Assembly: GCF_036365525.1 (NCBI RefSeq)
Contig: NC_090409.1
Coordinates: 39,132,437 to 39,196,436 of the forward strand
Source of the DNA: Heterodontus francisci
Taxonomy: Eukaryota
Reading direction: 5' to 3'
Length of the DNA: 64,000 bases
Of the stretch, positions 31,407 through 64,000 are shown one piece after another. The notes beneath the pieces are model-generated. The model searched no databases. It saw only the letters and a list, made by a program, of their open reading frames with translations, and was not told where the DNA came from. The position numbers and the translations under genes were made by a program. Position 1 is the first letter of the stretch. Every line of letters begins with the position of its first letter.

Positions 31407-32329
31407 GCTGGTGGGGTGCTCAGAGAGAGAGAGCGACACACACACACACACAGAAGGAGAGAGAAAGAGAGAGCTCCCTTCAGTGACGCAAGGCTTAGTT
31501 TTATCAAACAGGGCTGACATTAGGATAGGAAACACCAGTTTCCTTTGCAAGGCTGAATATAGCCACCACCCACAACATGCGAAGGGGGTTTTACCATCCT
31601 GCGGAGGCAGGGGACTTGCCTGGAATCTGTATATTACTCAGCTTTGGCCTTCTCTGCTTTGTGATTCAATGTCATAATGGTGCTTTGAAGCCAGGGACCA
31701 TCATTGCCGACCAGTCTCCCATCCAAACACCAGAGGACAGGTACATAGCAAGGGTCAGTGGCTCAGCTTAGAGGTAAAACCGCTGCTTAGAATCATGCAT
31801 TGCAGTAGGAGGCCATTCTGCCCATCGGGTCAGTACTAGCCCTTCACAGGAGCTGTTCAATTCGGGCTTTTTTTTTAAAAAAATTCGTTCATGGGATGTG
31901 GACGTCGCTGGCCAGGCCAGCGTTTCTTGCCCATCGCAAATTGAGCCTTCTTGAACCGCTGCAGTCCGTGTGGGGTGGGTACACTCACAGTGCTGTTCGG
32001 GAGGGAGCTCCGGGATTTTGACCCATCGACAGTGAAGGAACGGCGATATAGTTCCAAGTCAGGATGCTGTGTGATTTATTTATGTTTCATTTAATCTGTG
32101 TCTTTGCACAAAACAAGATACCATCAGAACTCTGTGCGGCTGCCGAGCAACCCTCCCCTGCCGAACTTCCCTATTAAACAGGAGCACCTTTTAAACTCTG
32201 CAGCTTTCCCTCGGATTGCTGCATGAACAGAACAGTCCTGCAATAAAGCTGCTATAGACTTACTGCCCACAGGAGGGCACCATTGAGCACAACCCACACA
32301 ATCCTATTCCCACAGAATGATTAATTGTC

Positions 32330-35003: not shown

Positions 35004-35172
35004 TTACTGCTGGACAGCCCCGTTCCCCAGAAGGTTTTGTTCTCCAGCTGCTCCATTCTGATGCTCAGGTGCTGTTGTGAAACATGGGACCTTGTGACCT
35101 GAACAAGTCACCCCTGTCAAAGGGACGACATTAGATGCTTCATTGCGATTGATGCTGAGTTTGTTCTCTTTC
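35004..35172 (-). CDS. Copy A terminal exon (cytoplasmic tail)
   Basis: Acceptor ggtttttccctcccag; phase 2 gives (W)KENKLSINRNEASNVVPLTGVTCSGHKVPCFTTAPEHQNGAAGEQNLLGNGAVQQ*; AATAAA about 130 nt downstream. Confidence 0.7.
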
Positions 35173-44100: not shown

Positions 44101-45464
44101 TGATGTCAACGGCAGTCACTCTCACCTCACCTCTGGATTACTAGTCCAGGCCTCTGGATTACTAGTCTAGTAACATAACCACTGCACTACTGTACCAATA
44201 AAATCAGAGTAAATGCAGAATACCTGAAACAGAAACCTCTCACCTGTTACAGAGAGATCGACATCTTGATGAAAGACAACATCTGCCCTCTTGTAAAACT
44301 GGCACACATACTTGTACTGGTCTGACTGCCTGAGGTCAGAGATCATAACTGACCAGTTGCCTTGTTCCAGTTGATCTTTGAACAGGTTTGTTCTGTTTCT
44401 GAACCGTGGGTCTTGTAGTGCCAAATCATCATTTCCATTGACAAATTTGTGTAAAACTCCACGCTTGAATATCCACCAAATTACCTGGAAATCAGAGACT
44501 GGGACATTCTCTTTGTAGACACATGGCAGCACAACCTGCTCCCCAAGGAACCCAGAAACTGGGACAGGCGAGTAACCTGGAAAAGATTGAAAGTATTTAT
44601 CCACAGATATAACCTCCCTGCTGGTACATTCCATCCCAAGCTTCACATGGTTACACTGCGATGCTTGATTTACAAGAAGCACTGATCAGTAACTCACTGC
44701 TTTCATTTCTGTGGGAAGGTTAAAGGTCAGGCATTAAGGGCCTTCAACTAAAACCAGCTTGTGCTGGATATTTGTATCCACAGAGCAGCTGGACAGCACT
44801 TTGAATCGTGTGTTTCCCATTGTACACATGCTGGGAGAACACATCAGGATATTGGTCACCCTGCCCACCTCCCCCCTTTGGGAGAACAATGACAGACCAG
44901 TGAACTGGCAGTGAGATCCCCAAACAAACACTGGATTTGGGACTGAGGTTTGCAGAATCACCCAGGCTTCAACACTGAACCAACTAATCCGAGCTCTGCT
45001 GAACGTGAGAGCAGTCACAGCGCTTACCTGAAACAGCAGCAACAGCATTTAGCAGCAGCAGGAGGAGGAGGAGTTTCTGTAAGTTGGGTCCCTGCAACAA
45101 GAAAACACAGTTACCCCCCTTTACCACAGTTTCTTGCTGCTCATGTCCATTTCTGAACCGGACTGTGTCACTGTGTCCCCCACCCCTGGGTGTAGATTAA
45201 CAGCTAGGTGTTTATTTTCAGTTTAAACACAGTTTCTCTCGCTCCATCTCCTGTCTGACATTTCTCCTTTTATAAATGAGACCCTGCCCCAGGGTCAGGA
45301 AGACAACGCCCCGAAATGGAACAAACTCTCCTCCTTTTTTTTTAGAGGGAGACAAACAATAAAGAGGCGAATCCTCGGGGAGAGAAAGGAAAGTTTCCCC
45401 CACATCCCCCTCCCTCTCCCCGGGTGTGAGACACTGACAATACCTGCAGCGCTTTTCCATCCAT
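35004..45464 (-). CDS. Copy A: single V-set Ig type I membrane protein, B7/CD276/butyrophilin-like, about 231 aa
   Basis: Exons 45444-45464, 45028-45091, 44244-44576, 36905-37013 and 35004-35172 total 696 nt in one frame, encoding signal peptide, V domain, TM and tail. Confidence 0.82.
35880..36590 (-). mobile_element. L2-like LINE 3' fragment
   Basis: TIGGRAFRCLGPKL; related to 10740-11790. Confidence 0.7.
36905..37013 (-). CDS. Copy A exon 4 (transmembrane)
   Basis: ctccag|GRGLSTEAIVGLVIGILLLLLLIAVIVVFVVRKRQR|gtgagt; 109 nt, phase 1/2. Confidence 0.87.
37150..37310. other. Assembly gap (161 N)
   Basis: Run of N. Confidence 1.
37761..38105 (+). mobile_element. HE1-type V-SINE
   Basis: gcacagtggcacagtg...gggttcaatt...gtggagtttgcaagttctccc...gggccgaa CR1-like tail. 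Confidence 0.85.
38330..40450 (+). mobile_element. Degenerate CR1 LINE ORF2
   Basis: [33 protein letters not shown]. Confidence 0.9.
41698..44130 (-). mobile_element. 5'-truncated LINE inserted in copy A only
   Basis: Flanked by CTCTGGATTA at 41688-41697 and 44131-44140; RT ORF 41992-42753. Confidence 0.88.
42684..43932 (-). mobile_element. Young CR1/HER1 LINE nested in the previous LINE
   Basis: Open RT ORF; AGGAA duplicated at 42679-42683 and 43933-43937; (ttagaa) tail. Confidence 0.92.
44244..44576 (-). CDS. Copy A exon 3 (IgV domain)
   Basis: VVLPC...VIWW...QDPRFRNRTNLF.DQL..GNWS..I..LRQSD..Y.C is a B7/BTN-type V-set pattern; 333 nt, phase 1/1. Confidence 0.92.
45028..45091 (-). CDS. 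Copy A exon 2 (signal peptide)
   Basis: ttgcag|GPNLQKLLLLLLLLNAVAAVS-G|gtaagc; 64 nt, phase 0/1. Confidence 0.87.
45444..45464 (-). CDS. Copy A exon 1 coding part (MDGKALQ)
   Basis: ATG...CAG|gtattg, phase 0; homologous to 56020-56040. Confidence 0.75.
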
Positions 45465-45579
45465 TCTCCCGAACCCTGATCATCCCCTCTCGGAGACGGA
45501 GACAGGGAATCTGCTGCTCAACCCGGATCGGCCAACTGCGCCTGTTATACTTTGAAACACAGGGACGATAGGGGTATGG

Positions 45580-46635
45580 TCCAGACAGAGGGGAATCAGT
45601 CCCGGTCCCCGTGTCTGTGTCTCTGTCCAGACAGAGGGGGGATCAGTCCCAGTCCCTGTGTCTGGGTTCAGACAGAGGGGGATCAGTCCTGGTCCCTGTG
45701 TCTGGGTCCAGACAGAGGGGAATCAGTCCTAACCCCTGTGTCTGGGTCCAGACAGAGGGGGATCAGTCCTGGTCCCAGTGTCTGGGTTCAGACAGAGGGG
45801 GATCAGTCCGAGTCCCTGTGTCTGGGTCCAGACAGAGGGGGATCAGTCCCAGTCCCCGTGTCTGGGTCCAGACAGAGGGGGATCAGTCCCAGTCCCCGTG
45901 TCTGTGTCAGGGTCCAGACAGAGGGGGATCAGTCCCGGTCCCTGTATCTGGGTCCAGACAGAGGGGGATCAGTCCGAGTCCCTGTGTCTGGGTCCAGACA
46001 GAGGGGGATCAGTCCCAGTCCCCGTGTCTGGGTCCAGACAGAGGGGGATCAGTCCCAGTCCCCGTGTCTGTGTCAGGGTCCAGACAGAGGGGAATCAGTC
46101 CCGGTCCCTGTGTCTGGGTCCAGACAGAGGATGATCAGTCTGGGTCCCTGTGTCTGGGTCCAGACAGAGAGGGATCAGTCCCGGTCCCTGTATCTGGGTC
46201 CAGACAGAGGGGGATCAGTCCCGGTCCCTGTATCTGGGTCCAGACAGAGGGGGATCAGTCCCGGTCCCCGTGTCTGGGTCCAGAAAGAGGGGGATCAGTC
46301 CCGGTCCCCGTGTCTGGGTCCAGAAAGAGGGGGATCAGTCCCGGACTCTGTGTCTGTGTCTGGGTCCAGACTGAGAGGGGAGTCAAACCCAGTCCCAGTC
46401 CCTGTGTCTGGGTCCAGACAGAGAGGGATCAGTCCTGGTCCCTGGGTCTGGGTTCAGACAGAGAGGGATCAGTCCTGGTCCCTGTGTCTGGGTCTGGGTT
46501 CAGACGGAGAGGGATCAGTCCCAGTCCCTGTGTCTGGGTCTGGGTTCAGACGGAGAGGGATCAGTCCCGGTCCCTGTGTCTGGGTCTGGGTCCAGACAGA
46601 GAGGGATCAGTCCTGGTCCCTGTGTCTGGGTCCAT
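45580..46635. repeat. 40-46-bp minisatellite directly upstream of copy A exon 1
   Basis: Unit tccagacagagggggatcagtcccggtccctgtgtctggg. Confidence 0.95.
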
Positions 46636-46639
46636 GGAG

Positions 46640-47165
46640 AGTATGCACACCATTCTGCTGTTAGGAAGGATGTTGCAGGATTTTGACCCAGCGACAGTTC
46701 TACTCGGGATGGTGTGTGGCTTGGAGGGGAACTTGCAGGTGGTGGTGTTCCCATGCATCTGCTGCCTTTGTCCTTCTAGTTGGTAGAGGTCATGGGTTTG
46801 GAAGGTGTTGTCTAAGGAGCCTTGGTGCGTTGCTGCAGTGCATCTTGTAGATGGTACACACTGCTACCACTGTGTGTCGGTGGTGGAGAGAGTGAATGTT
46901 TGTAGATGGGGTGTCAATCAAGCGGGCTGCTTTGTCCTGGATGGTGTCGAGCTTCTTGAGTGTTGTTGGAGCTGCACTCATCCAGGCAAGTGGAGAGTCT
47001 TCCATCACACTCCTGACTTGTGCCTTGTCGATGGTGGACAGGCTTTGGGGAGTCGGGAGGTGAGTTACTCGCCTCAGGATTCCCAGTCTCTGACCTGCTC
47101 TTGTAGACACAGTATTTATATGGCTGGTCCAGTTCAGTTTCTGGTCAATGGTAACCCCCAGAATG
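46640..47165 (-). mobile_element. LINE 3' fragment
   Basis: [15 protein letters not shown]...HSLHHR. Confidence 0.88.
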
Positions 47166-47469
47166 TTCTGGATGATATTTCCAGGATGGTGAGTGACCTT
47201 GAGAGGAACATGCGAGGCCTCCTTAGACCGACTGCACAATTTTTGTATCCGTGCTTATATAATGAATATTTTGCACTTGTTTTGCTCTCAGCAAATTTTA
47301 AAATTAAAAATTAGATTCCATAGTGAGGGAATAATGTTAAAAAGAAAGCCCAAACAGAAACAAAGCAAATTGACTATAATTATAAACTCTGTCCTGCTTT
47401 CCAGTCAATGAGGTTTTATCACAACTGCTGAAAGTCTTTATTTCACAATTTTATTGTTTTAGCTCGATT

Positions 47470-47760
47470 TCTATTGGTGGATTCTAACCGTCAATCAGCG
47501 CAGACCCGCCCCTCGGCGGCGAAACAGCTGGGCGGAGCATTCATCGCCTTGACCCTGATCGACACCGAGCTCGGCCAATAGGAACACAGACTGACATGAG
47601 TCGGTTCAGCCAATGGGCGGCAGCGGGGGCGGGACCGCGCTGAACAAGATGGCCCCCCGTGTCCGCCGCCATTTTAAAGTTTATTTCCTGCACCATCTGG
47701 TCTGGATGGTGAACGGTGCTGAAAAAAACAAGGAGGCGCAAACCGCAAACAGCAACGTTT
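47470..47760. promoter_or_regulatory. CpG island with housekeeping-promoter motifs
   Basis: Three CCAAT/ATTGG boxes, three GC boxes, and YY1-type CAAGATGGC and CGCCATTTT motifs. Confidence 0.6.
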
Positions 47761-47818
47761 ATCAGGAAGGAGCCGCTCGCCATTACTGACCCCCCCGAGT
47801 GTGAGACACTGACAGTAC

Positions 47819-47854
47819 CTGAAACCCCTTTTCTATCGTCAAGGCCTCAATCAT
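47819..47854 (-). other. Third copy of exon 1 (candidate distal alternative first exon of copy A, or paralogue remnant)
   Basis: Similar to 45424-45520. Reads ATG ATT GAG GCC TTG ACG ATA GAA AAG GGG TTT CAG|gtactgtcagtgtctcacac, phase 0. Confidence 0.55.
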
Positions 47855-48063
47855 CCCCTCCCGGAGACAGGGGAGCTGCTGCTGCTCAGCCGGAGGAGTC
47901 AGACCGAAAGAGAAAGAGCAGCTGCAGGCAGAGACCAAAGTACAAGGGCAGGGTGGAGCCGGAGGCTGAGCGGATAATGTTATCGGACTGGCAATCCAGA
48001 GGCAATAAAAACAGAAAGTGCTGGAAAACGATCAGGCAGCGTCTGTGCAGCGAGAGAGAACAG

Positions 48064-48100
48064 AGTTAACGTTTCAGGTCTGTGTCCCTTCATCAGAACT
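48064..48100 (-). ncRNA. Second minimal hammerhead motif at the end of a Penelope-like element
   Basis: Reverse complement reads AGTT-CTGATGA-AGGgacacagaCCT-GAA-ACGT-T-AACT; stem II is weaker. Confidence 0.55.
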
Positions 48101-48748
48101 GCAATAGATTAATAACCACAATGTCAGGGTTAGACCTGAGAGAAGGGAGTGCAGCAAGTTCAGAGGGAGAGAGGTTAGAGTGAGTGAGTGAGTGAGGGGG
48201 GTGCGGGGAGGGGGTGGCAGAGAAACTAAGAAGACCGATGTCACGCCGACAGTTTTCAATGAAAAGCTCAAGAGCGGGTAAGAGGCCAGGGGGAGGGGTC
48301 CGATGCCGGAGGCGGGTGAATGGGACTGCTGGTCGGCGGGGTTGGACTCCTGGTCAAAGAAGTGATCCCAGAGGCAAAAGTGACGAAGGAAAAGCTCAAC
48401 ATCATGTCCAGCACAAAATACATTGAGGTAGGGGGCGTAAGGGTGTAAAACGGAGTCCTTTGCTAAGTACAGGTTGTTCAGCATCAAAGAGGGGAAGGTC
48501 AGAGGGTATTGTGAATACATGGTGTTACAACCGAGGTGGGAGGAATGCACTGTTAATTCAGTCCCGCTTCTCCACGGGCCACAGCATATCAATACATTTT
48601 CCCACTTACTGAAACAGCCAGTTAGATACTCTGTCCCCCAGAATAAAGCACAGCAACCAGGTCTTCTTTAATCAACAACAAAATTAACTGTTTATTATAA
48701 AGCCAAATCTTAACCAATAATGAAGTAAATATATATTCAAACCGAGAT

Positions 48749-49620
48749 TGTAACAAGGTTTAATGTTAAACACACTCTCTTTATAGCTCCCCTTTGGCGA
48801 ATCCTTGTTCACCGCTTTCCAATTATAAGGAAAAGAAATCAGCACACACAGGTTTTTTTAGGTTTAAAGAAGAAAGATTGAAATTTATTAAATTTAACCT
48901 TGAACTCTAATTCGGATAATGCCTACAGATACATGACCCGCCCACGCCAGCATGCATACATGATGTATGTAGATAAGGACTGAAAAGAGAAGATAAATGA
49001 AGTGAAAAGTTTGAGGCAATCTCTAAAAGGGGGGTTCGTTACTGTGCTTCAAGCTCGCTGTGGAGTCTTTGATTGTAGGTAGGTCTTACATGTCATTGGG
49101 GCCCAGTATTCTTCTTAAACCTTGTTCAATGTAGGAGACTTTTCTCTCTTTGAGGTTCATGTGTCTTCAGTGGGTTCAGAGGCTTGTGAGAAAGAGATGG
49201 GAGCAGGCAGGAGAGACCTTCTTCAGTCTAGGAGTAAACTGCTTTCTGCCAGTTACAAACACTGTGGCAGGTTCAAATTCAAAAAAAAAAACTCAGGTGG
49301 CCCTGCAAGTTAGTCATGTGACTAGCTGGTCTGACCACGTCCATTTTTGTATACGGCAATCTTAGCCATCAACCTGGAATGTGAACTCCTCCACCTTTAA
49401 GATCTGATAATCAAAAGTCCATTGTGGATTGAACGTGTCAGGGTCTTTTGTCCCTTTTAAGTATTGTCTGTAAATAGGCAAATATCTTTCCAGTCAAGGG
49501 TCTGGTGTTTTTTTTTTTAAAAAAGCAAGTTCTTTTTTTACACCAGTAACAGTTTAAAAATCAATGTGCATGTGGCAAAATTAATATGCCTCATTTTTGG
49601 GAATGGGGGCCTGCATGACA
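48749..49620. mobile_element. Solo LTR (inner, 872 bp) with 4-bp TSD
   Basis: TGT...ACA termini; AGAT at 48745-48748 and 49621-49624. Confidence 0.82.
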
Positions 49621-49963
49621 AGATGTTAAAGTCCCTTATTTTCCCTAGCCCTCATGCACACACCACACATCCATTCAAAAACTGGTTAACCGGGGGAGCA
49701 AAAAGGAGTTTGGTTTACAGCTGTTTCATAGGAATGAAAAGAACAATAAAAAAAAAACGTTGTCATGATCTGGAAGGAAGATCTTTGGTTTGGTGAGGTG
49801 AACCAAAGTCGAATAGTTGGATGCCACTCGAAGTCTTTCCAGGTGAGGATGAGCCGTCGATGATGGGTAGGCTTTCAAAGAACCTCAACAAAAGAAGGCT
49901 TTATATAAGGCTTTCCATCAGGTATGCAGCATGAAGGCTGTTTGGTCTTACAGCAGCAGTAAA

Positions 49964-50330
49964 GGGCGGCACAGTGGCGCAGTGGTTAGCACCGCAGCCT
50001 CACAACTCCAGGGACCCGGGTTCGATTCCGGGTACTGCCTGTGTGGAGTTTGCAAGTTCTCCCTGTGTCTGCGTGGGTTTTCTCCGGGTGCTCCGGTTTC
50101 CTCCCACAAGCCAAAAGACTTGCAGGTTGATAGGTAAATTGGCCATTATAAATTGTCACTAGTATAGGTAGTTGGTAGGGAAATATAGGGACAGGTGGGG
50201 ATGTTTGGTAGGAATATGGGATTAGTGTAGGATTAGTATAAATGGGTGGTTGATGTTCGGCACAGACTCGGTGGGCCGAAGGGCCTGTTTCAGTGCTGTA
50301 TCTCTAATCTAAATCTAAAAAATCTAATCT
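49964..50330 (+). mobile_element. Full-length HE1-type V-SINE inside the outer LTR
   Basis: A-box tggcgcagtgg, B-box ggttcgattcc, (ctaat) tail. Confidence 0.9.
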
Positions 50331-51324
50331 ATAGCAGGAAAAGATTTCTTGCAATATTCAGGATTTCTTCAAAACACAGAAGGTAACAGGAACCACTCTT
50401 GATGCAGGAATCCTTTAGCGAGAGATAATAATCTTTCCGGGTCTACTTCTGACCTCCGGGCAGGTCAGAATCCAATTTCAAAATGTCTGCTTTTTGGCCA
50501 AACCCACTGACTTTATAAAAGTTCAAAACTGAAACCACAACTTTCCATAAACAATTCACATGCCCAGTGATAAATTCTCTCCTGTGGTAACAGAGGGTAA
50601 CTCTGAGGTCCACCCCCTGCTGGTTTCCTTGATATTACCTGCATTCCTGTCCTTGTTTACCAGTTCAGCTTTCGTTGAACGTCCTATCAAAACATCCATA
50701 AAGTTCAGATCTCAATATCCACTGAAATCCTTTTCAGTTTTTAAAGACATGGAATCTGAAGTTTTAATACAAAAAAAAAATCCTCGTAACAATGGCAAGA
50801 GGTGAGATTAGGAGGGATGGGGGGTCAGAGGGAAGGGGAAGAAAGATCTGGAGGGGTGTTGGTACCCATGAGGTGCTGGAGCTTATGCTTCTTTAACACC
50901 TGAAAGGAAGAGATAAAGTTTTTTGTAAATGCATCGGAGAAGGTGAAGGATGAAATGGAACTGCAGAGCAGGACAGCTCTGAGATCGGGTGAGTCGGTGC
51001 TGCTGGAGAGAGAGGTCAAGTGCGTCCATGTGCACGGAGTATGGATCGCGATACCTGTAATCCTGGGTGGATTCAAAACACAGAGGATAAAACTTCAGTT
51101 GGAGTCTACGTGGAATAAGTCGGAGTCGGAGACAGTCGCTGAGGAAGGAGATGTGGCTGTGAAAATGAGTTTTAGCAGAAACCTTATTGAACAGCAGGAG
51201 GGAAATGGGAAGCAATGAAGGTGAGAAATGTAAACGAGATAAACGGAAATCCCAGAGAAAAGAGCAGAACTGCTTTGTGGTAGCATTCCTGCAAGAGAAG
51301 TGGCAGTGAAGTAAATACTAAAAT

Positions 51325-52175
51325 AACAGCAAAATAATGTGGATGCTGGAACTCTGAAATGAGAACAGAAATGTGAGAAACGTAGCCCACTTGATAACAA
51401 TTTACACCAAGTCAAACTCTGAAGAAGTAAGTTTATTTAACGTTCTTGCAAGATCGGGTGTCCTACAAGCAGGCACACCGATCAACATATTCAGTTCATG
51501 TTTATGCAATACAAATCCATTTGTCCACGCCTTTATTTTACATTATTGGTTATAACGTATTATGACACTAACCTATCCTATGGTTGCTACAGTCTCCTCC
51601 TCTGTTTACTTCTCCCCCTACTCTAACTTTCTAGCCCCTAACTCTTGTTTTTGTTTTACCTTATTTGGCTCTCCATTATGTGTTTTAACTTGCAGCTGTC
51701 AGCCTTTATCTTAGTGGGGCAGTTTCTTATTCACTACATCCGTTGTTCTAACTCTTGCTGTTTCTCTGTTATCTGCCTAAGCACAATTTTTAAGTGATGT
51801 ACTGTCCCAAGGTCTCCACTTACATACCCTTATCAATTCTCTTTGTCAGTGATGTACTGTCTTAAGGTCTCCACTGACATATCCTTATCAGTTCTCTTTT
51901 TCAGTGATTTCATTATGTTGTGCACAAATGACTTCTTGGTAACTTTCCACAAGCTGTAGAAACAACATTTCAGTATTTCTTATTCTCACAGAAAGTGTCA
52001 GAAATACTCAGCAGATCTGGCAGCATCTGTGTAGAGAGAAACAGAGTTAACATTTCAAGTATCTGACCTTCCATCAGAACCTGGAATGTTAACCCTGTTT
52101 CTCTTTACTTGCTGAGTATTTCCAGCACTTTCTGTTTTTATTTCAGAGATCCAGCATCTGCAGTATTTTGCTTTT
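51325..52175. mobile_element. Palindromic Penelope-terminus-derived element, interrupted by an LTR
   Basis: Arms gcaaaata..gatgctgga..tctgaaat..acagaaa and tttctgt..atttcaga..tccagcatc..tattttgc. Confidence 0.6.
51372..51990. mobile_element. Solo LTR (619 bp) with 4-bp TSD
   Basis: TGTGAGAA...TTCTCACA termini; GAAA on both flanks. Confidence 0.85.
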
Positions 52176-52239
52176 CCGCATGGATTCTGACATGCTGCCG
52201 GCCAGAAGCATACACTTCCAGCAGGTCTGAGCCGACCCA

Positions 52240-52760
52240 GTCCCTCAGAGTCGCAAACAACTCAACTGGTAATCTGTCGCTCCTGGGGGGGTGGTTTTAC
52301 TCGTCTCGAAGGACCTGACAGCCTTTGTCAGTTTGTCCAGAATTAGCGGTTTGTCCAGACTCTCCCACGTACTGTCATCTAAGACCTCCGTGACAGATGA
52401 CAGGAAGGACTGGGAGGCCGTGCTGTCTGTGGGCTTCACGTCGTACAGCCCAGCATAAAAGGATTTGCTGAACCTTAGTATGTCAGACTGCGATGACGTT
52501 ACCAAGCTGTCTTCTTCCTCCAGGCTGCTGATCACAGAGCTCTCTCTGTGTACCTTTCGGAAGAAGTAACACGAGCACGTCTCATCCTGCTCCACGGAGC
52601 GGACTCTGGACTGGAAGATGATCTTGCAGGCCTCTGCGGCAAAGAGCAAGTCCTGCTGGCTCTTCACCTCTTGGAGATCCTCCTTGGCCTCGACCCCAAT
52701 CGACTGCAGCCGGAGCAGATTCTGCATGCTTTTCTGCCAACTCTCTGATCATCCTGGGAT
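52240..52760 (-). mobile_element. Tx1/L1-like LINE ORF2 fragment
   Basis: SRVRSVEQDETCSCYFFRK...SFYAGLY linker preceding the RT. Confidence 0.65.
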
Positions 52761-53018
52761 AGACAGTCATATGAACATATGAATTAGGAAAAGAACTCAG
52801 TCACATGAATTCTCGAGCCTGCTCAGCCATTCAATAAGATCATGGCTGATCTGATTACTCCACATTCTCAACTATCCCCAATAACCTTTCCCCACCTTGC
52901 TTATCATGAATCTATCTACCTCTGCCTTAAAAATATTGAAAGGCCTTTTGACATCATCACATTTTGAAGAAGAGCTTTATACAAACGGGAACAGTGTTAT
53001 ACAACATCAACTGAGATT

Positions 53019-53091
53019 GGACCCTAATGAGATTTGAACTCACAACTCATGGTTTACAAGACCAGCTCTCTAACCCCTGAGTAATGGAGCC
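53019..53091 (-). pseudogene. tRNA-Thr(TGT) pseudogene
   Basis: Reverse complement GGCTCCATTACTCAGGGGTTAGAGAGCTGGTCTTGTAAACCATGAGTTGTGAGTTCAAATCTCATTAGGGTCC; 73 nt, TGT anticodon loop, mismatches in acceptor, D and anticodon stems. Confidence 0.8.
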
Positions 53092-53499
53092 AGATGTCAG
53101 CGAGGAGGAGGCAGGAGTCGGAGAAGAACACCGGCTTGACGTCAGTGGATCCGACTGTGAATGCGCGGGACACAAACAGGAAGTCAATCCTGGAATGGAC
53201 GGACCCGTCTGGTCTTCACCAGGTCTATCTACACTCTGCTCCATCTGCAGGCCAAGACATTGTGCAGCTTGGCCTCTTTGACTGTTTCCATTTGGAGTCT
53301 GGACGGGGCTGAGTAAATTGGTCCTATATTCTGTGGAGTTCAGAAAAATGAGAGGTGATCTAATTGATTCTGAAAGGGTTTGATAGGGTAGAAGCTGAGA
53401 GATTGTTCCCGCTGGTCGGGGGATCTAGAACATGGGGACACAGTCTCAGGATAAGGGGCCAATCATTCAGGACTGAGATGAGGAGAAATTATTTCAGGT

Positions 53500-55425
53500 A
53501 TAGGCAGCTGGGATCAAGCGAGTCCCTCGGAGTATAAGGGATGCAGGAGTACACTTAAGAAGGAAATTAGGAGGGCGAAAAGGGGCCATGAGATTTCCCT
53601 GGCAGATAAGATAAAGGAGAATCCTAAAAGATTCTGTAAGTTTTTAAGAGTAAAAGGGTAGCGAGGGAGAGAGTAGGTCCCCTTAAGGATCAGTGTGGTA
53701 ATGTATGTGAGGAGCCACTGGAAATGGGCGAGGTCTTAAATGAATACTTCTCGTCTGTATTTACCATGGAGAAGGTCATGGAATCTAGTGAGTTCAAGGG
53801 AGGGAACAGCGATATCCTGGAGCCTATCAACATTACAAAGGAGGAGGTGTTGGAGGTTTTGAAGCGCATTAAGGTGGATAAATCCCCAGGGCCTGACCAG
53901 ATGCATCCTAGGACATTATGGGAAGCAAGGGAGGAGATTGCTGGGGCCCTGGCAGAGATTTTTGTATCATTGTTAGCCACGGGTGAGGTACCGGAAGACT
54001 GGAGGATATCTAATGTTGTGCCTTTAAGAAGGGCAGCAGGGATAAGCGAGGGAACTACAGGCCGGTGAGCCTTACATCAGTAGTGGGAAAGTTATTGGAA
54101 GGGATTCTGAGAGACAGGATCTATATGCATTTGGAAAGGCATGGTCTGATTCGGGATAGTAAGCATGGCTTTGTATGTGGGAAATCATGTCTCACAAATT
54201 TGATTGAGTTTTTTGAGGAGGTGACTAAGAGGATTGATGATGGCAGGGTGGTGGACGTTGTCTACATGGACTTTAGCAAGGCCTTTGACAAGGTCCCGCA
54301 TGGTAGGCTGGTCTGGAAGGTTCGAACACATGGGATCCATGGTGAGCTAGCCAATTGGATACAAGATTGGTTTGGTGATGGGAGGCAGAGGGTGGTAGTG
54401 GAGGGTTGTTTTTCAGATCGGAGGCCGGTGACCAGTGGTGTGCCGCAGGGATTGGTGCTGGGCCCTCTGTTTGTCATATATATTAATGACATGGATGAGA
54501 ATGTAGGGGGCATGATTGGTAAGTTTGCAGATAACACCAAAATTGGTGGTGTAGTGGACAGTGAAGAAGGTTGTCTAAGATTACAACAGGATATAGATAA
54601 ACTGGGAAAGTGGGCAAGGGATTGACAAATGGAATTTAACGCAGACAAGTGTGAAATTATGCATTTTGGGACGCTAAACCAGGGCAGGACATATACAGTG
54701 AATGGCAGGGCCCTGGGGAGTGTTGTTGAGCAGAGAGACCCTGGGGTGCAAGTACATAGTTCCCTGAAAGTGGCAACACAGGTAGACAGGATGGTGAAGA
54801 AGGCATATGGCATGCTTGCATTACGGCCGAGGCATTGAGTACAAGAGTTGGGACGTCCTGTTACAGTTGTACATAACGTTGGTTCGGCCGCATTTGGAGT
54901 ACTGTGTGCGGTTCTGGTCGCCGCACTACAGGAAAGATGTGATTAAGCTAGAGAGGGTGCAGAAAAGATTCACAAGGATGTTGCCTGGTTTGGAGGGCTT
55001 GAGTTATAAAGAGAGATTGGATAGGCTGGGTCTGTTTTCACTGGAGCTAAGGAGGTTGAGAGGGGACATGACAGAGGTATATAAAATTATGAGAGGCATA
55101 GATAAGGTAGATAGCCAGAATCTATTTCCCATGGTAGGGGTGACTAAAACTGGAGGACATAGATTTAAGGTGAGAGGGAGGAGGTTTAAAGGAGTTCAAA
55201 GGGGTACATTTTTCACACAAAGAATAGTGGGTATCTGGAATGAGCTGCCAGAGGAGCTGGTGGAGGCAGGAACAGTAGCAACATTGAAGAGGCATCTGGA
55301 CAGGTACTTGAATGAACAAGACATGGAGGGATATGGAATTAATGCAGGCAGGTGGGATTAGTATAGATAGGCATTATGGTCGGCATGGACGCGGTGGGCC
55401 GAAGGGCCTGTTTCTATGCTGTACC
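53500..55425 (+). mobile_element. 5'-truncated CR1/HER1 LINE
   Basis: [37 protein letters not shown]; several frameshifts. Confidence 0.93.
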
Positions 55426-55439
55426 ACTCTAACTCTAAG

Positions 55440-55660
55440 TGAGCCTGGAGGCAACGGAAGACGAGCTCAATGTCATACCGAGGGTGAAATTCATTGAGGT
55501 GGAGGCGGAAGGGGATAAAACAGAGTCCTTTGCTGAGTAAAGAACGTTCCCTGTCAGAGAGAGGAAGGTCTGAGGGTTTAGTGAATACACAGCAAGGGGT
55601 CAGATCAGAGGGAAGTGAAGGGGAAGAAGGATCTGGAGAGGCAATAGTCCCCATCAGCTC
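55440..55660 (-). mobile_element. Penelope-like fragment
   Basis: DLPLSDRERSLLSKGLCFIP..LNEF..YDIELVFR. Confidence 0.7.
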
Positions 55661-55704
55661 CTGGAGCTGGTCTTCCTCAACACCGGAAATGAACTAAACA
55701 GAAC

Positions 55705-55990
55705 TGAATCAGCCAAGGGGCGGGGCCAGGGGACTGTGGGCGGGGTTAGTAATGAGTGACAGGCCAGTCCGGCCGCTGATTGGGCGATTGGCTCTGAGAC
55801 CCGCCACTGGGGCCAGGAGAAGTTGTTAGCCCCACCCCGGCGGGTCGAGCGCTGAGTGACAGGCGGGCCCGGTCGCTGATTGGGCGACCTGCTCTGACCC
55901 CGGCCCTGACTGCCAATAGAAGCCGTGCCCGCCAAGTATTGGTTTCTTTATAAACCGGATGAAGGGTTCAGGCAGATTCCCGCCATTTTC
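55705..55990 (+). promoter_or_regulatory. CpG-rich promoter of copy B
   Basis: GC boxes (GGGCGG), several ATTGG/CCAAT motifs, TATAAA at 55949-55954, and YY1/initiator-like CGCCATTTT at 55981, about 30 nt after the TATA. Confidence 0.7.
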
Positions 55991-56019
55991 ACTGGAGCTG
56001 GTGATCCAGGATCGGGGCA

Positions 56020-56040
56020 ATGGATAGAAAAGCACAGCAG
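56020..56040 (+). CDS. Copy B exon 1 coding part (MDRKAQQ)
   Basis: ATG...CAG|gtattg, downstream of a TATA/CCAAT promoter. Confidence 0.78.
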
Positions 56041-59000
56041 GTATTGTCAGTGTCTCACACCCGGGGGGTCAGTCATGGGGAGAGGGACCATGGACTGTTT
56101 CAGGGCTGCTCCCGGTCTCAATGTGTCTCAGAGCCGGGAGGGAGGGGAGTCAGTAATGTGGAGAGGGACCATGGACTGTGTCAGGGCTGCTCCCGGTCTC
56201 AATGTGTCTCAGAGCCGGGAGGGAGGGGGGTCAGTAATGGGGAGAGGGACCATGGACTGTGTCAGGGCTGCTCCCGGTCTCAATGTGTCTCAGAGCCGGG
56301 AGGGAGGAGGGTCAGTAATGGGGAGAGGGACCATGGACTGTGTCAGGGCTGCTCCCGGTCTCAATGTGTCTCAGAGCCGGGAGGGAGGGAGGTCAGTAAT
56401 GGGGAGAGGGACCATGGACTGTGTCAGGGCTGCTCCCGGTCTCAATGTGTCTCAGAGCCGGGAGGGAGGGGGGTCAGTAATGGGGAGAGGGACCATGGAC
56501 TGTGTCAGGGCTGCTCCCGGTCTCAATGTGTCTCAGAGCCGGGAGGGAGGAGGGTCAGTAATGGGGAGAGGGACCATGGACTGTGTCAGGGCTGCTCCCG
56601 GTCTCAATGTGTCTCAGAGCCGGGAGGGAGGGAGGTCAGTAATGGGGAGAGGGACCATGGACTGTGTCAGGGCTGCTCCCGGTCTCAATGTGTCTCAGAG
56701 CCGGGAGGGAGGGGGGTCAGTAATGGGGAGAGGGACCATGGACTGTTTCAGGGCTGCTCCCGGTCTCAATGTGTCTCAGAGCCGGGAGGGAGGGGAGTCA
56801 GTAATGTGGAGAGGGATCATGGACTGTGTCAGGGCTGCTCCCGGTCTCAATGTGTCTCAGAGCCGGGAGGGAGGAGGGTCAGTAATGGGGAGAGGGACCA
56901 TGGACTGTGTCAGGGCTGCTCCCGGTCTCAATGTGTCTCAGAGCCGGGAGGGAGGGGGGTCAGTAATGGGGAGAGGGACCATGGACTGTGTCAGGGCTGC
57001 TCCCGATCTCAATGTGTCTCAGAGCCGGGAGGGAGGGGGGTCAGTAATGGGGAGAGGGACCATGGACTGTGTCAGGGCTGCTCCCGGTCTCAATGTGTCT
57101 CAGAGCCGGGAGGGAGGGAGGTCAGTAATGGGGAGAGGGACCATGGACTGTGTCAGGGCTGCTCCCGGTCTCAATGTGTCTCAGAGCCGGGAGGGAGGGG
57201 GGTCAGTAATGGGGAGAGGGACCATGGACTGTTTCAGGGCTGCTCCCGGTCTCAATGTGTCTCAGAGCCGGGAGGGAGGGGAGTCAGTAATGTGGAGAGG
57301 GACCATGGACTGTGTCAGGGCTGCTCCCGGTCTCAATGTGTCTCAGAGCCGGGAGGGAGGGGGGTCAGTAATGGGGAGAGGGATCATGGACTGTGTCAGG
57401 GCTGCTCCCGGTCTCAATGTGTCTCAGAGCCGGGAGGGAGGAGGGTCAGTAATGGGGAGAGGGACCATGGACTGTGTCAGGGCTGCTCCCGATCTCAATG
57501 TGTCTCAGAGCCGGGAGGGAGGGGGGTCAGTAATGGGGAGAGGGACCATGGACTGTGTCAGGGCTGCTCCCGGTCTCAATGTGTCTCAGAGCCGGGAGGG
57601 AGGGGGGTCAGTAATGGGGAGAGGGACCATGGACTGTGTCAGGGCTGCTCCCGATCTCAATGTGTCTCAGAGCCGGGAGGGAGGGGGGTCAGTAATGGGG
57701 AGAGGGACCATGGACTGTGTCAGGGTTGCTCCCGGTCTCAATGTGTCTCAGAGCCGGGAGGGAGGGGGGTCAGTAATGGGGAGTGGGACCATGGACTGTG
57801 TCAGGGCTGCTCCTGGTCTCAATGTGTCTCAGAGCCGGGAGGGAGGTCAGTCATGGGGGGAGGGACCATGGACTGTGTCAGGGCTGCTCCCGGTCTCAAT
57901 GTGTCTCAGAGCCGGGAGGGAGGGGGGTCAGTAATGGGGAGAGGGACCATGGACTGTGTCAGGGCTGCTCCCGGTCTCAATGTGTCTCAGAGCCGGGAGG
58001 GAGGGAGGTCAGTAATGGGGAGTGGGACCATGGACTGTGTCAGGGCTGCTCCCGGTCTCAATGTGTCTCAGAGCCGGGAGGGAGGGGGGTCAGTAATGGG
58101 GAGAGGGACCATGGACTGTGTCAGGGCTGCTCCCGGTCTCAATGTGTCTCAGAGCCGGGAGGGAGGGGGGTCAGTAATGGGGAGAGGGACCATGGACTGT
58201 GTCAGGGCTGCTCCCGGTCTCAATGTGTCTCAGAGCCGGGAGGGAGGAGGGTCAGTAATGGGGAGAGGGACCATGGACTGTGTCCTGTCCCGGTTCAGAA
58301 ATGGACATGAGCAGCAAGAAACTGTGGTAAAGTGGGGTAACTGTGTTTTCTTGTTGCAGGGACCCAACTTACAGAAACTCCTCCTCCTGCTGCTGCTGCT
58401 AAATGCTGTTGCTGCTGTTTCAGGTAAACGCTGTGACTGCTCTCACATTTCAGCAGAGCTCGGGGCTGCTGGTGATATGGATTATATCAGGATTGATCTT
58501 CCTGGATGGTGCTAACCTTGTGAATTTATACAGACTGCAGTTAGCTATCTCCTGGAAAGAACATTTGTCTGGGTGTCTGGGACTGAAATCAGTAATGTGT
58601 ATATTACTGGGGAATCTTCTTCTTCTTTGGCCTCCTTGTCTCGAGAGACAATGGGTAAGCGCCTAGAGGTGGTCAGTGGTGTCAGTCGCTGTGAGGCAAC
58701 TATGGAGTGACCTCTCCATGGCGCATGCCTGGGCGAATGTATGGAGGTTGAGAGTTGCCCAAGCGTCAAAACCCCCCTCTCGGCCTTTCTGGTGGGGTCC
58801 AAAGGAGTGCAGAGCACGACGTTTGGCACCGGTAGTATTCATTATATCAGGAATTCATCTTGCTTTAAGGTGCTGTGTTCACTGTGAGTGGGCCCATTGA
58901 GGGAGTGGACACAGTCGGTTCACATTACACATAATGATCATGAGACCTGAAAGGAAGGCAGTTAATGTCTTCAGATTAACCCCTGTGATGTGAACAGTGG

Positions 59001-62000
59001 AATCTGGACACTGAGTGTTAGTGAGAATGAATCTAGAAGAATCACTCGACACTTGGGTCTGCTCCAATGTCAAACAGTTTATTGAGTTACGCCAGCAGGG
59101 AGCAGGTCACTGGGCTGTCCAGATGCCCCTCCACTGAACAATGAAAAATCATCAATACTTATACATTTTCAAACAGTTACTCAGCCCATCCTTTCTGGAC
59201 ATGGTCCAATCATAATGATTACAGATTCTCTCCATTGATTATTAAAGACCAATAGAAGTGGTTACCAGGTGTGAAAGGGGCTGCAGGACCAACCCATGGA
59301 CAGATAGGGGATTACTCATGATGTTTTCCATTCCTTTCTAGTCCCCATCCTTGGTTCTCCTGTACGCACACCACCTTATCTTAACCTTGTTACAGGCTGG
59401 TATCTTTGTCAGCATTCCACATGGACATCTGCTCTCCATTGAATAAGTCTTTGAATTTATGTTACTCAGTTCCTGTGTGGAATGTGGTCAAGTTGGCTAA
59501 ACCCCATGATGCCTTGCAAACTCTTCATTGTTCACTAAAATTACGTTACGAGTTACTCAAATAACATTTAAACAGGATGTTCTTTTCTGCAGGTGCCTCT
59601 GCGCTTGGGAATACCCGTCAACACTGAGCAACACTCGGTGACACTGGGATGGGGTCCTGAGCACTGGGATCAGGAGTCTGGGACAGTCCTGGATCAAATA
59701 GAACTGGGAATTGCCTCTGAGCATGGGGAGTAGGGTCATCAGGATTGGGGATTGTGTTTTGGGTCCTGGGAGGGGGCAGAGTCTGGCCGTATTAGGGTGA
59801 GGAGCAAGGTCTGACAGGTTAGTGGTGGAGGGAGATGAGGATCCACATTGCCTCGGCCCCTTTCAGACCATCAGGTGCTGCCTCACCCCCTACACAGTGT
59901 ACTCATCCGTCATTGTCCCCCCAACCTGTCCAAAGCCCTTTCCACATCCTCGGGTACCCCCTCCCCCACCCGTTCCTGTCTTTACATTTCAGGGTCAGTT
60001 TTCTGCTCCTGAGCTCCACCTCACATTGTGCACCCCCAGTCTGTCATTGTTCTCCCAAAGGGGGGAGGTGGGCAGGGTGACCAATATCCTGATGTGTTCT
60101 CCCAGCATGTGTACAATGGGAAACACACGATTCGAAGTGCTGTCCAGCTGCTCTGTGGATACAAATATCCAGCACAAGCTGGTTTTAGTTGAAGGCCCTT
60201 AATGCCTGACCTTTAACCTTCCCACAGAAATGAAAGCAGTGAGTTACTGATCAGTGCTTCTTGTAAATCAAGCATCGCAGTGTAACCATGTGGAGCTTGG
60301 GATGGAATGTACCAGCAGGGAGGTTATATCTGTGGATAAATACTTTCAATCTTTTCCAGGTTACTTGCCTGTCCCAGTTTCTGGGTTCCTTGGGGAGCAG
60401 GTTGTGCTGCCCTGTATCTACAAAGGGAATGTCCCAGTCTCTGATTTACAGGTAATTTGGTGGATATCCAATCGTGAAATTTTACACAGATTTATCGATG
60501 GGAACGATGACTTAATACAACAAGACCCACGGTTCAGAAACAGAACAAACCCGTTCAAAGATCAACTGGAGCAAGGCAACTGGTCACTAATGATCTCTGA
60601 CCTCAGGCAGTCAGACCAGAATGAGTATCAGTGTCAGATTTACAAGAGGATTGGTGAGCACTATCAATGGCAACAAGCTGATTCAGTCCATCTCTCTGTA
60701 ACAGGTGAGAGGTTTCTGTTTCAGGTATTCTGCATTTACTCTCTGATTTTATGAGTACGGTAGTGCAGTGGTTATGTTACTGGACTAGTAATCCAGAAGC
60801 CTGGACTAATAATCCAGAGAACGTGGCTTCAAATCCCACCATGGCACTTTCAGAATTGAAATTCAGTTTAAAATAAATCTGGAAATATAAAGTTGGTCCC
60901 AATAAAAGTGACCATGAAGCTGTTGGATTGTTGTAAAACCCAACTGGTTCACTAATGTCCCTCTCGGGAAGGAAACCTGCCATCCTTACCCGGTCTGGTC
61001 TATATGTGACTCCAGTCCCACATTAACCTGGTTAACTTTTAACTGCCCTCTGATTTGCTCGGTTACTTCAATCAGTTTGTATCAAACCACTAGAAAGAAA
61101 AAACAGACTAAAACTGAACAGACCACTGGCTGTGACCCAGACATCAAATCAGGACACAGGAAAGGCAAACCCAGCCCAGTTGACACTGCAAAGTCCCCCT
61201 CGCTGACATCTGGAAATTGGTCTCCATGTTAGGCGAGCTGTGTGACAGTCATACTCACAGAATCAACCCTCCAACCCAGACTCCTCTATCACCATCCCTG
61301 GGTATGTCTTGTCCCACTGGCAGGACAGACCCACCCGAGGTGGGGGCACAGTGGTATCCAGTCAGGAGGGAGTTTTTTATTCTTTTGCTGCATTTGCTGA
61401 CAATGCATCCACTCGGTGTCGCAATACTTGCACATGTGAAAATGCAGCCTGATCCACTGAAACGTCGCTGTCTGTGACCTTTTTGGCAGCTGCCAGTAAT
61501 AAAGATGGCGACGCTCAATTTATCACAAAACAAATGAAACACAAATGCCCACAGTGGCTGTGATCACTGCCTCCATCACACCCCCAACAGTACCTCGCTC
61601 CCTCCTGCCATCACCACCTCCATCCCACCCCCAGCAATACCTCGCTCCCTCCTGCCATCGCCACCTCCATCAGTACCTCGCTCCCTCCTGACATCACTAC
61701 CTCCATCCCACCCCCAGCAGTACCTCGCTCCCTCCTGCCTTCGCCACCTCCATCCCACCCCCAGCAGTACCTCGCTCCCTCCTGCCTTCGCCACCTCCAT
61801 CCCACCCCCAGCAGTACTTCGCTCCCTCCTGCCATCGCCACCTCCATCCCACCCCCAGCAGTACCTCGCTCCCTCCTGCCATCGCCACCTCCATCCCACC
61901 CCCAGCAGTACCTCGCTCCCTCCTGCCATCGCCACCTCCATCCCACCCCCAGCAGTACCTCGCTCCCTCCTGCCATCGCCACCTCCATCCCACCCCCAGC

Positions 62001-63699: not shown

Positions 63700-64000
63700 G
63701 TGAGTTCCAGAATGATCTGCAGTTCCCATTGTTAATTCTAGTTTTGTTTTATTATATTTGGTGTTGTGGAAATGTTGTGTACACTGATACACTTTGTGCT
63801 GTGTAGGATGTTTCAATGCTGCATTATCCAGTCACTTCCAGCTTGTTGTCATCCTCTAGCTGCTGAACTGAAGGTGAAGAGCAGGAATGTGCGGCTCCCT
63901 CTATCACACAGTTAATAGACACTCGCCTAATCTCTGCAGCAAACAACTCACCAGCCTACACCTAAAATCCCCTTGTCCCCTCTCCTCTGACTTTTCACCA

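Follow-up and report, generated by a model that had tools for sequence, protein, structure and literature searches.

How can the exons of two neighboring genes be older than the introns that surround them? This question is raised by a 64,000-nucleotide stretch of Heterodontus francisci DNA (the window), in which two genes adjoin head to head, copy A on the minus strand (RefSeq XP_067874663/664) and copy B on the plus strand (RefSeq XP_067874667/668). Both consist of a leader, a B7-type IgV domain, an optional stalk, a transmembrane (TM) segment, and a 55-amino-acid tail without tyrosine, and their RefSeq proteins (236 to 249 amino acids) contain V-set as the sole domain. Translation of the copy A IgV exon (44244..44576, minus strand, phase 1, codons from 44574) gives a Pfam V-set match (E = 3.7e-12) and 100% matches to the RefSeq proteins P0004 and P0050; the copy B IgV exon (60360..60704, plus strand, codons from 60362) gives a V-set match when translated (E = 2.9e-11) and corresponds at 100% to P0066 and P0068, i.e., XP_067874667/668. 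Window exons were searched singly, and full-length searches used P0050 and P0066.

The leader (signal peptide) exons are located at 45026..45094 on the minus strand in copy A (tblastn, 100% to P0004 residues 12-34) and at 58357..58425 on the plus strand in copy B. The first coding exon lies at 47819..47854 in copy A (minus strand; MIEALTIEKGFQ) and at 56020..56040 in copy B (plus strand; MDRKAQQ), and the A-side homolog of the latter, at 45444-45464, belongs to a 65-nt piece with no more than 87.7% identity. Copy A further contains an optional Pro/Thr-rich stalk exon (38259..38297, minus strand; ERNCPPVLNTPVP) used in isoform X1 (P0050), a TM exon (36905..37013, minus strand, by tblastn to P0004), and the cytoplasmic tail exon (35007..35172, minus strand). 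The copy B TM exon (63579..63699, plus strand) carries an internal 7-amino-acid duplication and two cysteines. A LINE insertion with a reverse-transcriptase open reading frame (41700..44130, minus strand) occupies intron 2 of copy A, is absent from copy B, and breaks the alignment of the two copies.

We show here that divergence between the genes is mosaic, in a comparison that at the DNA level covers the two copies A and B. The original prediction had noted identical signal peptides and about two differences in the approximately 320 bp preceding the V exon, and both observations were confirmed. The leader peptides match and differ by one synonymous change in the DNA, and the intron 5' of the V exon (A 44897-44577, B 60039-60359) shows 2 differences in 321 nt (0.6%). 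Extended by 52 nt into the V exon, these 3' 321 nt of intron 1 form a near-identical tract (A 44525..44897, minus strand; B 60039..60411, plus strand) with 3 differences in 373 nt. The leader homology block (A 44989..45161, minus strand; B 58290-58463) has 4 mismatches and 1 indel in 173 nt, a divergence of 2.3%. This block begins 6 nt past the end of an 81-nt minisatellite of copy B. Around the TM exon, 5 differences were counted in about 300 nt of the following intron (A 36604..36904, minus strand; B 63700-64000) and 5 in the 136 nt preceding it (A 37014-37149), giving 10 differences in approximately 435 nt, or 2.3%. An N run occupies 37150-37310. The expectation that introns flanking the V exon are much less divergent than the exon itself thus held for the 5' intron but only in part for the 3' intron, which is not near-identical (5.2% in the first 115 nt, 6.2% over a further 566 nt), yet remains below the V exon body (p = 1.6e-6). 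Other noncoding pieces diverge by 12% (exon 1b piece) and 15% (pre-TM piece), and no further upstream homology was found in the A/B alignment; the pair is therefore old rather than a recent duplicate.

The V exon contrasts strongly with the intron that precedes it: its body differs at 44 of 266 positions, compared to 2 of 321 in the intron (Fisher p = 3e-14). Among the first 96 residues, 19 differ, and the F-G loops, ADVVFHQDVD in copy A and IGEHYQWQQADSVH in copy B, are separated by a 4-amino-acid (12-nt) indel, in agreement with what had been read from the sequence before. Divergence is uneven along the exon, amounting to 4.8% in codons 1-35, 26% in codons 36-53, 4% in codons 54-86, and 23 to 56% in codons 87-102. 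Two hyperdivergent patches account for the clustering of changes that had been described after the C-strand Trp and near the F-strand Cys. Patch 1 (codons 36-53; A 44416..44469, minus strand; B 60467-60520) has 14 differences in 54 nt and spans the C-C' loop and the C' and C'' strands. Patch 2 (codons 87-110; A 44245..44316, minus strand; B 60620-60703) diverges by 23 to 56% in addition to the 12-nt indel and spans the F strand, the F-G loop, and the G strand. Amino acid differences favor the C-C'-C'' and F-G segments (22 of 48 residues versus 6 of 62 elsewhere, p = 2e-5), as the original prediction had anticipated. It is with the front sheet (GFCC') that B7-type V domains usually bind their ligands.

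Every codon change in the F-G loop is nonsynonymous. At least seven synonymous exon differences had been noted, and exactly seven purely synonymous codon differences were counted (codons 17, 47, 48, 50, 51, 70, and 91); four of these fall within the five adjacent codons 47-51 of patch 1 (P of about 2e-5 at a 6% baseline). With a dS of 0.17 to 0.23 and an omega of 0.5 to 0.8 (Nei-Gojobori, A versus B), the V exon is older but not measurably under positive selection. The TM exon repeats this pattern of a diverged exon amid introns differing by about 2%. It carries 26 substitutions in 109 nt (24%) and a 12-nt indel, significantly more than its flanking introns (26/109 versus 10/~435, p = 3.5e-12), with a dS of 0.33 and a dN of 0.29. 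Synonymous divergence of the modules therefore far exceeds the 0.6 to 6% of the adjoining introns, which bears out the view that the exons are older than their introns. The predicted dN/dS excess was not observed, omega over the V and TM exons being 0.5 to 0.9, and diversifying selection stays a matter of inference.

Which family do these proteins belong to? The modeled V domain of copy A (AlphaFold pLDDT 92.9) is closest to the IgV domains of B7-H4 and PD-L1 in Foldseek (TM-scores 0.86 to 0.88; top match 4gos, B7-H4, 0.87), and phmmer against the PDB returned CD276 (1e-13), VTCN1 (3e-13), MOG (7e-11), and also PD-L1. The canonical Cys18, Trp, and Cys91 and two conserved N-glycosylation sites are present, and both cysteines are invariant or nearly so in the family. 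With an IgV fold, a Cys-Trp-Cys core, and closest similarity to B7-type domains, the V domain is placed by sequence and structural model in the B7/butyrophilin superfamily. Its best sequence and fold matches are the B7 family IgV domains (B7-H4/VTCN1, B7-H3/CD276, PD-L1, MOG, and butyrophilins), but identity to them is only 23 to 30%, and the shark proteins contain neither IgC nor B30.2. In canonical B7 ligands (CD80/86, PD-L1, and B7-H3/H4), the ectodomain comprises an IgV followed by an IgC domain; no Ig-like open stretch was detected between the V and TM exons of either copy. Butyrophilins possess a cytoplasmic B30.2 (PRY/SPRY) domain, whereas the 55-amino-acid tail matches no Pfam family. 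The CEACAM N domain is of the IgV type but lacks an intradomain disulfide; the shark domain has Cys18 and Cys91, and no CEACAM chain was among the best 60 PDB matches. In paired receptors, one partner carries an ITIM or ITSM and the other a charged TM residue or a link to an ITAM adaptor. Neither a tyrosine motif in the tail nor Lys, Arg, Asp, or Glu inside the membrane segment of any TM type was found (type T2 has Gln), and no sign of an activating and inhibitory pair was seen. The V-stalk-TM layout also suggested the CD28/CTLA4 family, whose members have a single V domain, a stalk, a TM segment, and a tail with Tyr-based motifs; the tails of A and B lack tyrosine, and their V domains score best against B7 ligands. 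A study on the diversity of that family (PMC11599192) reports no shark cluster of this kind, and membership in it was rejected.

Chicken BG genes are among the closest likenesses. Salomonsen et al. (2014, PMC4046983) reported about 14 clustered genes, many of them hybrids with differing 5' and 3' histories. Both systems have a B7/butyrophilin-type single V domain and a TM segment without a C domain, and both form clusters of about 14 genes whose parts have different histories. However, BG tails are long with heptad repeats, whereas the shark tail is short (55 amino acids) and not repetitive; BG genes are found within or close to the MHC, whereas the shark cluster adjoins KCNN4; and the V sequences resemble each other only as B7-type domains generally do. 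We therefore did not assign the shark genes to BG despite the common V-TM layout.

The two copies belong to a family of at least 14 paralogs on one scaffold, adjoining KCNN4. In the phylogeny, 15 of 15 horn shark V domains fell into one clade (99/91), a horn-shark-only clade comprising V types A to E with the subclades A, B, and C/D/E. At the protein level, TM types reassort against V types across the family. A-type V domains were found with three TM types: the TM exons of A4 and A5 are 92% identical to that of gene E and 59% to that of copy A, and the TM of A3 is 83% identical to that of copy B. Likewise, the 7-amino-acid TM duplication is present both with and without an A-type V, and the patch 1 variants KRG and RNG combine with differing F-G types. 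Unitigs from the DNA run covering the pre-V intron had 0 to 1 differences and depths of 115 to 162, a unitig matching only A and its twin had a depth of 18, and one for the A-type F-G loop had a depth of 43.7, corresponding to approximately 13 to 19, 2, and 5 genes, respectively. Easily over-read as contig depths are, these values suggest that the pre-V intron is common to the whole family.

Transcription is evident from RNA contigs containing the leader-to-V splice joint (45026 to 44574, minus strand, GT..AG). This joint and an approximately 1000-fold contrast in depth between exon and intron were present in runs X1, X2, and X9. For copy B, transcription is taken from the RefSeq models, since its RNA variants are common to other V types. 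One intron-less leader-V contig occurred within a DNA-labeled run. The proposal of a gene family in a cartilaginous fish thus proved correct; the family is multigene (at least 14 genes), transcribed, and B7-like. Outside sharks, the searches found no ortholog exceeding 50% identity, the nearest matches being teleost multi-V models named 'butyrophilin-like 2' or 'hemicentin-like' (26 to 38%), and our literature search for any account of the shark family returned nothing relevant.

We consider it probable that gene conversion keeps the backbone of these genes alike and that exon modules escape conversion or are swapped. A and B would then be two old paralogs, with V types A and B, of a horn-shark-specific expansion, whose parent family would be shark-wide type I membrane proteins with one B7-type IgV and one TM segment, an optional stalk rich in Pro/Thr, and a tail that is short and conserved. 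Conversion between paralogs would keep the TM-flanking introns, the leader exon, and the 3' portion of intron 1 near-identical, and would have been less recent in intron 2 and the V exon framework. Three modules, the C'-C'' segment, the F-G segment, and the TM exon, would persist as deep lineages reassorted among genes, the two V modules lying on the front sheet. We infer that conversions homogenizing these modules are removed by selection and that the proteins serve as a diversified set of surface ligands or receptors. Leader and intron divergence of 0.6 to 2.3% against an exon dS of 0.17 to 0.33 is the pattern of concerted evolution with exon escape, and homogenized tracts may also be common to several paralogs, for which the observations are unitig depths and a protein-level incongruence of V and TM types. 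The idea of conversion or V exon exchange among paralogs fits the reassortment over at least 14 genes, but the backbone is not wholly homogenized, and its stronger form, in which conversion homogenizes everything but the binding exon, fails on the 3' V intron (5 to 6%), the other noncoding pieces (12 to 15%), and the TM exon, which also escapes. Some observations count against the preferred explanation or sit awkwardly with it. Pairwise omega lies below 1, there is no simple conversion gradient, since the leader block (2.3%) is more diverged than the adjoining intron (0.6%), and near-identical tracts exactly flanking the TM exon are hard to explain without selection or a later exon-sized exchange. 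A simpler model, a 3' baseline of about 6.5% plus one recent conversion tract on the 5' side, was dropped in view of a TM exon diverged by 24% within introns at about 2% and the noncoding pieces at 12 to 15%.

Could the pair instead stem from a recent inverted whole-gene duplication, the V segments and TM exon of one copy having been replaced by short tracts from distant paralogs, such that exons were exchanged and introns were not homogenized? The divergent blocks are exon-sized in a backbone whose tracts are only 0.6 to 6% apart, V codons 54-86 (4%) resemble that backbone, and the family clearly shows reassorted V and TM types. However, this reading seems unlikely given the 12% and 15% pieces and the lack of other upstream homology. 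Moreover, no donor is visible at the protein level, no other paralog pairs the patches of A or B with a different backbone type, and unitig depths suggest that far more than two genes share the intron. Another reading keeps the recent duplication, takes the introns to give its true age, and invokes fast exon divergence by positive selection or exon-targeted hypermutation. The clustering of amino acid changes on the C-C'-C''/F-G face (p = 2e-5) and the exclusively nonsynonymous codon changes of the F-G loop agree with this, but synonymous divergence, too, exceeds that of the intron 3- to 30-fold at an omega of 0.5 to 0.9, five conserved codons hold four synonymous changes, and the TM exon, which has no binding face, behaves in the same way, making fast exon divergence very improbable.

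Also very improbable is that function rather than conversion conserves the introns, for example because they act as an enhancer or alternative promoter or host an RNA. A contig in X9, a run with another organism label, covers 348 nt of the intron with only 2 differences, and the intron contains a CCAAT-like motif and has a fold z-score of -2.08; yet this fold signal is weak, no Rfam match was found at E up to 1, RNA depth on the intron is approximately 1000-fold under that on exons, and enhancer constraint does not normally produce near-identity over 320 nt and again over 300 nt behind the TM exon. Collapsed or misjoined paralogs deserve mention in a cluster this repetitive, with its minisatellites and near-identical copies. 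An assembly artifact would nevertheless not set boundaries at exon modules twice, independent DNA-run contigs match the window exactly over one exon and one intron segment, and RNA contigs and RefSeq models fit both copies exon by exon, so that we give this explanation almost no weight.

The process itself is already known from bovine CEACAM32 and the MHC; it is the shark family for which no description was found in the literature. In bovine CEACAM32, GENECONV finds tracts only in the leader exon and introns while the ligand-binding Ig exon is spared, and a distinct TM exon has been co-opted; Hanske et al. (2020, PMC7042247) concluded that conversion of the mature protein is impeded by selection. 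The CEACAM32/CEACAM1 paralogs, like the shark genes, form a multigene Ig-superfamily receptor cluster. They belong, however, to a mammal and to a different family, with N domains lacking the Cys-Cys bridge of the B7-like shark domain. CEACAM32 is one escaping gene, whereas the shark cluster holds several reassorting V and TM lineages, and the shark escaping unit is smaller than an exon, consisting of two patches in the V exon. In the MHC, too, binding-site exons hold old lineages while flanking introns are homogenized by recombination or conversion, but the sequences contrasted there are mostly alleles of a single locus under balancing selection, whereas in the shark they are paralogs.

A more far-reaching and doubtful reading is a germline cassette system, in which the identical introns of about 13 to 19 copies would serve as homology arms for the repeated shuffling of hypervariable V patches (C'-C'' and F-G) and alternative TM exons among paralogs. 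As a side possibility, spliced cDNA might take part in such shuffling (compare the intron-less leader-V contig). If this were true, sharks would possess a repertoire of B7-like surface molecules that arises combinatorially but without rearrangement.

Our analysis of this locus points to a shark-wide, lineage-expanded, B7-like V-only family that appears strongly expressed and so far carries only inconsistent automatic names (MOG-like, VTCN1-like, CD276-like, ICOS-ligand-like, and sodium channel beta-4-like). For annotation, paralog trees built from whole genes or introns will mislead here. The genes provide a clear, quantifiable case, in a very old jawed-vertebrate lineage, of immune-type Ig genes with binding-face segments escaping concerted evolution, in which escape can affect less than a whole exon and can extend to the membrane anchor.

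Copies A (minus strand) and B (plus strand) are inverted duplicates in head-to-head orientation, separated by about 13 kb on a 44 Mb scaffold that carries both, and they adjoin KCNN4, which is directly beside the cluster (first coding exon 31008-31637, minus strand) and was also placed at window positions 2345-9920. Human KCNN4 is at 19q13, among Ig-superfamily clusters (CEACAM/PSG and PVR/nectin). Window exons were searched singly and unjoined, and database proteins served as full-length queries. The V exon of A (44576-44244) was 100% identical to RefSeq XP_067874663/664 (proteins P0050/P0004), and that of B (60360-60704) to XP_067874667/668 (P0066/P0068). On the minus strand, A further comprises a first coding exon (47854-47819), a leader exon (45094-45026), an optional stalk exon (38297-38259), a transmembrane (TM) exon (37013-36905; a run of N occupies 37150-37310), and a tail exon (35172-35007). 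On the plus strand, B has a first coding exon (56020-56040), a leader exon (58357-58425), and a TM exon (63579-63699); its tail exon lies past the end of the window, in which no B stalk exon was found. An IgC exon is absent from both genes. Two alternative plus-strand first exons (48320-48427 and 49765-49842) are 100% identical to first exons that RefSeq assigns to three other genes of B type (XP_067874638 to 653) and are missing from B's own models. Their distance from the A first exon, approximately 470-1900 bp, hints at a promoter region that works in both directions.

The original prediction held that the V exon is far more divergent than its flanking introns. This was borne out on the 5' side, where the 3' part of intron 1 differs at 2 of 321 nt (0.6%; Fisher p = 3e-14 against the V exon body), but intron 2 falls short of near identity, diverging by 5-6% (5.2% in the first 115 nt, 6.2% in a further 566 nt). 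Signal peptides proved identical, with one synonymous difference in the DNA. As expected, 19 of the first 96 V-exon residues differ, 7 codons differ by synonymous changes only, and the F-G loops are unrelated and differ in length by a 4-aa indel. V-exon divergence is confined to two patches, codons 36-53 (14/54 nt, 26%) and the F-G segment (23% in codons 87-96; 56% plus a 12-nt indel in codons 97-102), set in a framework differing by 4.8% in codons 1-35 (a single change within the initial 52 nt) and 4.0% in codons 54-86. The TM exon (26/109, 24%, with a 12-nt indel) is likewise bounded by introns with 5/136 differences before and 5/301 after it, and thus the divergence map displays the intron/exon contrast twice. 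The leader block differs at 4/173 positions (2.3%), an exon 1b piece at 8/65 (12%), and a pre-TM piece at 11/73 (15%).

Elsewhere in intron 1, 91 nt in A (44898-44988) and 1575 nt in B (58464-60038) are unalignable. A high-depth DNA unitig is an exact match to A as far as 44897, beyond which it continues unlike A, suggesting that the B-like form of intron 1 is common and that A carries a deletion. Beyond these segments, repeats break up the A/B alignment, among them a LINE inserted at 44130-41700. This LINE lies in A intron 2 inside a tRNA-derived SINE, is absent from B, and retains an open reverse-transcriptase stretch of 414 aa (42762-44003, minus strand). Minisatellites were found upstream of A exon 1b (40-nt unit, 25 copies, 45578-46634), in B intron 2 (47-nt unit, 17 copies, 61570-62341), and at 56063-58284 (81-nt unit, 27.5 copies, 96% matches), the last stopping 6 nt before the B leader homology block.

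An AlphaFold model of the A V domain, built from a 45-sequence alignment (pLDDT 92.9), contains strands A (4-8), B (14-16), C (30-35), C' (39-45), C'' (48-49), D (62-64), E (76-78), F (88-95), and G (98-109). Its best Foldseek matches were the IgV domains of B7-H4 and PD-L1 (TM-score 0.86-0.88), and sequence searches concurred with the fold (CD276, VTCN1, MOG, and PD-L1). The C-C'-C''/F-G sheet is the usual binding face of B7-type V domains. As anticipated, amino-acid differences between A and B cluster on these segments, at 22 of 48 residues versus 6 of 62 elsewhere (p = 2e-5).

Every accession from XP_067874629 to 673 is a family member, and grouping accessions by isoform series gave at least 14 genes. 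V type A is found in five genes, one of which encodes a V protein identical to that of A, types B and C in four each, and types D and E in one each. When analysed by maximum likelihood together with 36 V domains (33 proteins) of 10 other shark species, the 15 from the horn shark formed a single clade (99/91) with subclades A (100/98), B (100/95), and C/D/E (97/80). The best non-shark matches were teleost multi-V "butyrophilin-like 2" or "hemicentin-like" models (26-38% identity). Across the family, A-type V domains are paired with three TM types: the TM exons of paralogues A4 and A5 are 92% identical to that of gene E and 59% to that of A, while that of A3 is 83% identical to B's, with a 7-aa duplication common to both. 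Within the V exon, the patch 1 (C'-C'') variants KRG and RNG occur with differing F-G types. Since all four combinations occur at both levels (V/TM types and patch 1/F-G), exchange is required both between and within exons. The tail matches no Pfam family and lacks Tyr, and none of the TM types has a charged residue; hence, nothing marks an activating/inhibitory pair, and the designation of A and B as paired receptors was not upheld. Stalk TPV(P/L)(N/D) units number 1 to 4 depending on the paralogue. Some isoforms stop in GIVFKIITASIKMKHLMSSL after the stalk exon, without a TM segment, and are possibly secreted; others stop in QRCSAS after TM, and several RefSeq models are read-through or truncated isoforms (P0006, P0010, P0060, and P0068).

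All read evidence came from Logan contigs. In X1 and X2, small runs on the sample that also supplied the genome, contigs carry a leader-to-V joint from 45026 to 44574 (GT..AG, minus strand), and the same joint was present in X9, a run with another organism label. X1/X2 contig depth summed to ~50-170 over intron 1 but reached 1e5 to 6e5 at the leader and V exons (44244-44576 and 45026-45094). Joint and exon depth together indicate that the family is transcribed and spliced, as the prediction required, chiefly with A-type letters. The exon depths hint at very strong expression in the source tissue, although contig depth is unreliable. In the DNA run X3, unitig depths agree among themselves with the gene counts: 18.0 for the patch 1 version that A shares solely with its twin, 43.7 for the F-G loop of A type (five genes), and 115 and 162 for intron 1 with 0-1 differences. 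This suggests some 13-19 copies with identical intron sequence, a figure which we take as a lead only, because copy number cannot be read directly from contig depth. A 1816-nt X3 contig (depth 7.5) joins a divergent V exon start (44485-44574) to the leader (45026 onwards) without intron 1, and could represent either a processed retrocopy or a paralogue whose intron differs.

By the Nei-Gojobori method, the A and B V exons have dS of 0.17-0.23 and dN of 0.10-0.17 (omega 0.5-0.8), and the TM exons dS of 0.33 and dN of 0.29. Protein-conserved codons 47-51 of patch 1 (GNDDL) carry four synonymous changes (P ~2e-5 at a 6% baseline). These dS values and synonymous changes imply that the modules are old, in agreement with the proposal that exons predate their introns; a dN/dS excess, expected of a diversifying receptor, was not seen in the pairwise A/B data. 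Fast evolution limited to the exons, which would leave the introns as the clock, is unlikely beside these synonymous changes. Constraint on the intron would explain its near identity; this too is unlikely, as the intron has no Rfam match and a weak fold signal (z = -2.08). An assembly artefact, which would make the mosaic spurious, is likewise unlikely.

The main rival, in which a recent duplication preceded replacements of exon size, we regard as doubtful. The non-coding pieces at 12-15% divergence and the lack of other upstream homology argue against newly duplicated genes whose exons were later changed. Given these pieces and no other homology upstream, A and B are better described as old paralogues with homogenised tracts.

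In the MHC, the same signature of introns set against binding-site exons is classical. It has also been published for bovine CEACAM32, where conversion affected the leader exon and introns and spared the Ig exon, the TM exon being distinct (PMC7042247). In architecture and hybrid-gene evolution, the closest parallel is provided by the chicken BG genes (PMC4046983). No description of the shark family was found in the literature. Here, gene conversion among paralogues has probably homogenised the backbone of leader, introns, and V framework, while the C'-C'' segment, the F-G segment, and the TM exon would have persisted as old modules that reassort within the family; we infer that selection acts against the homogenising of these modules.
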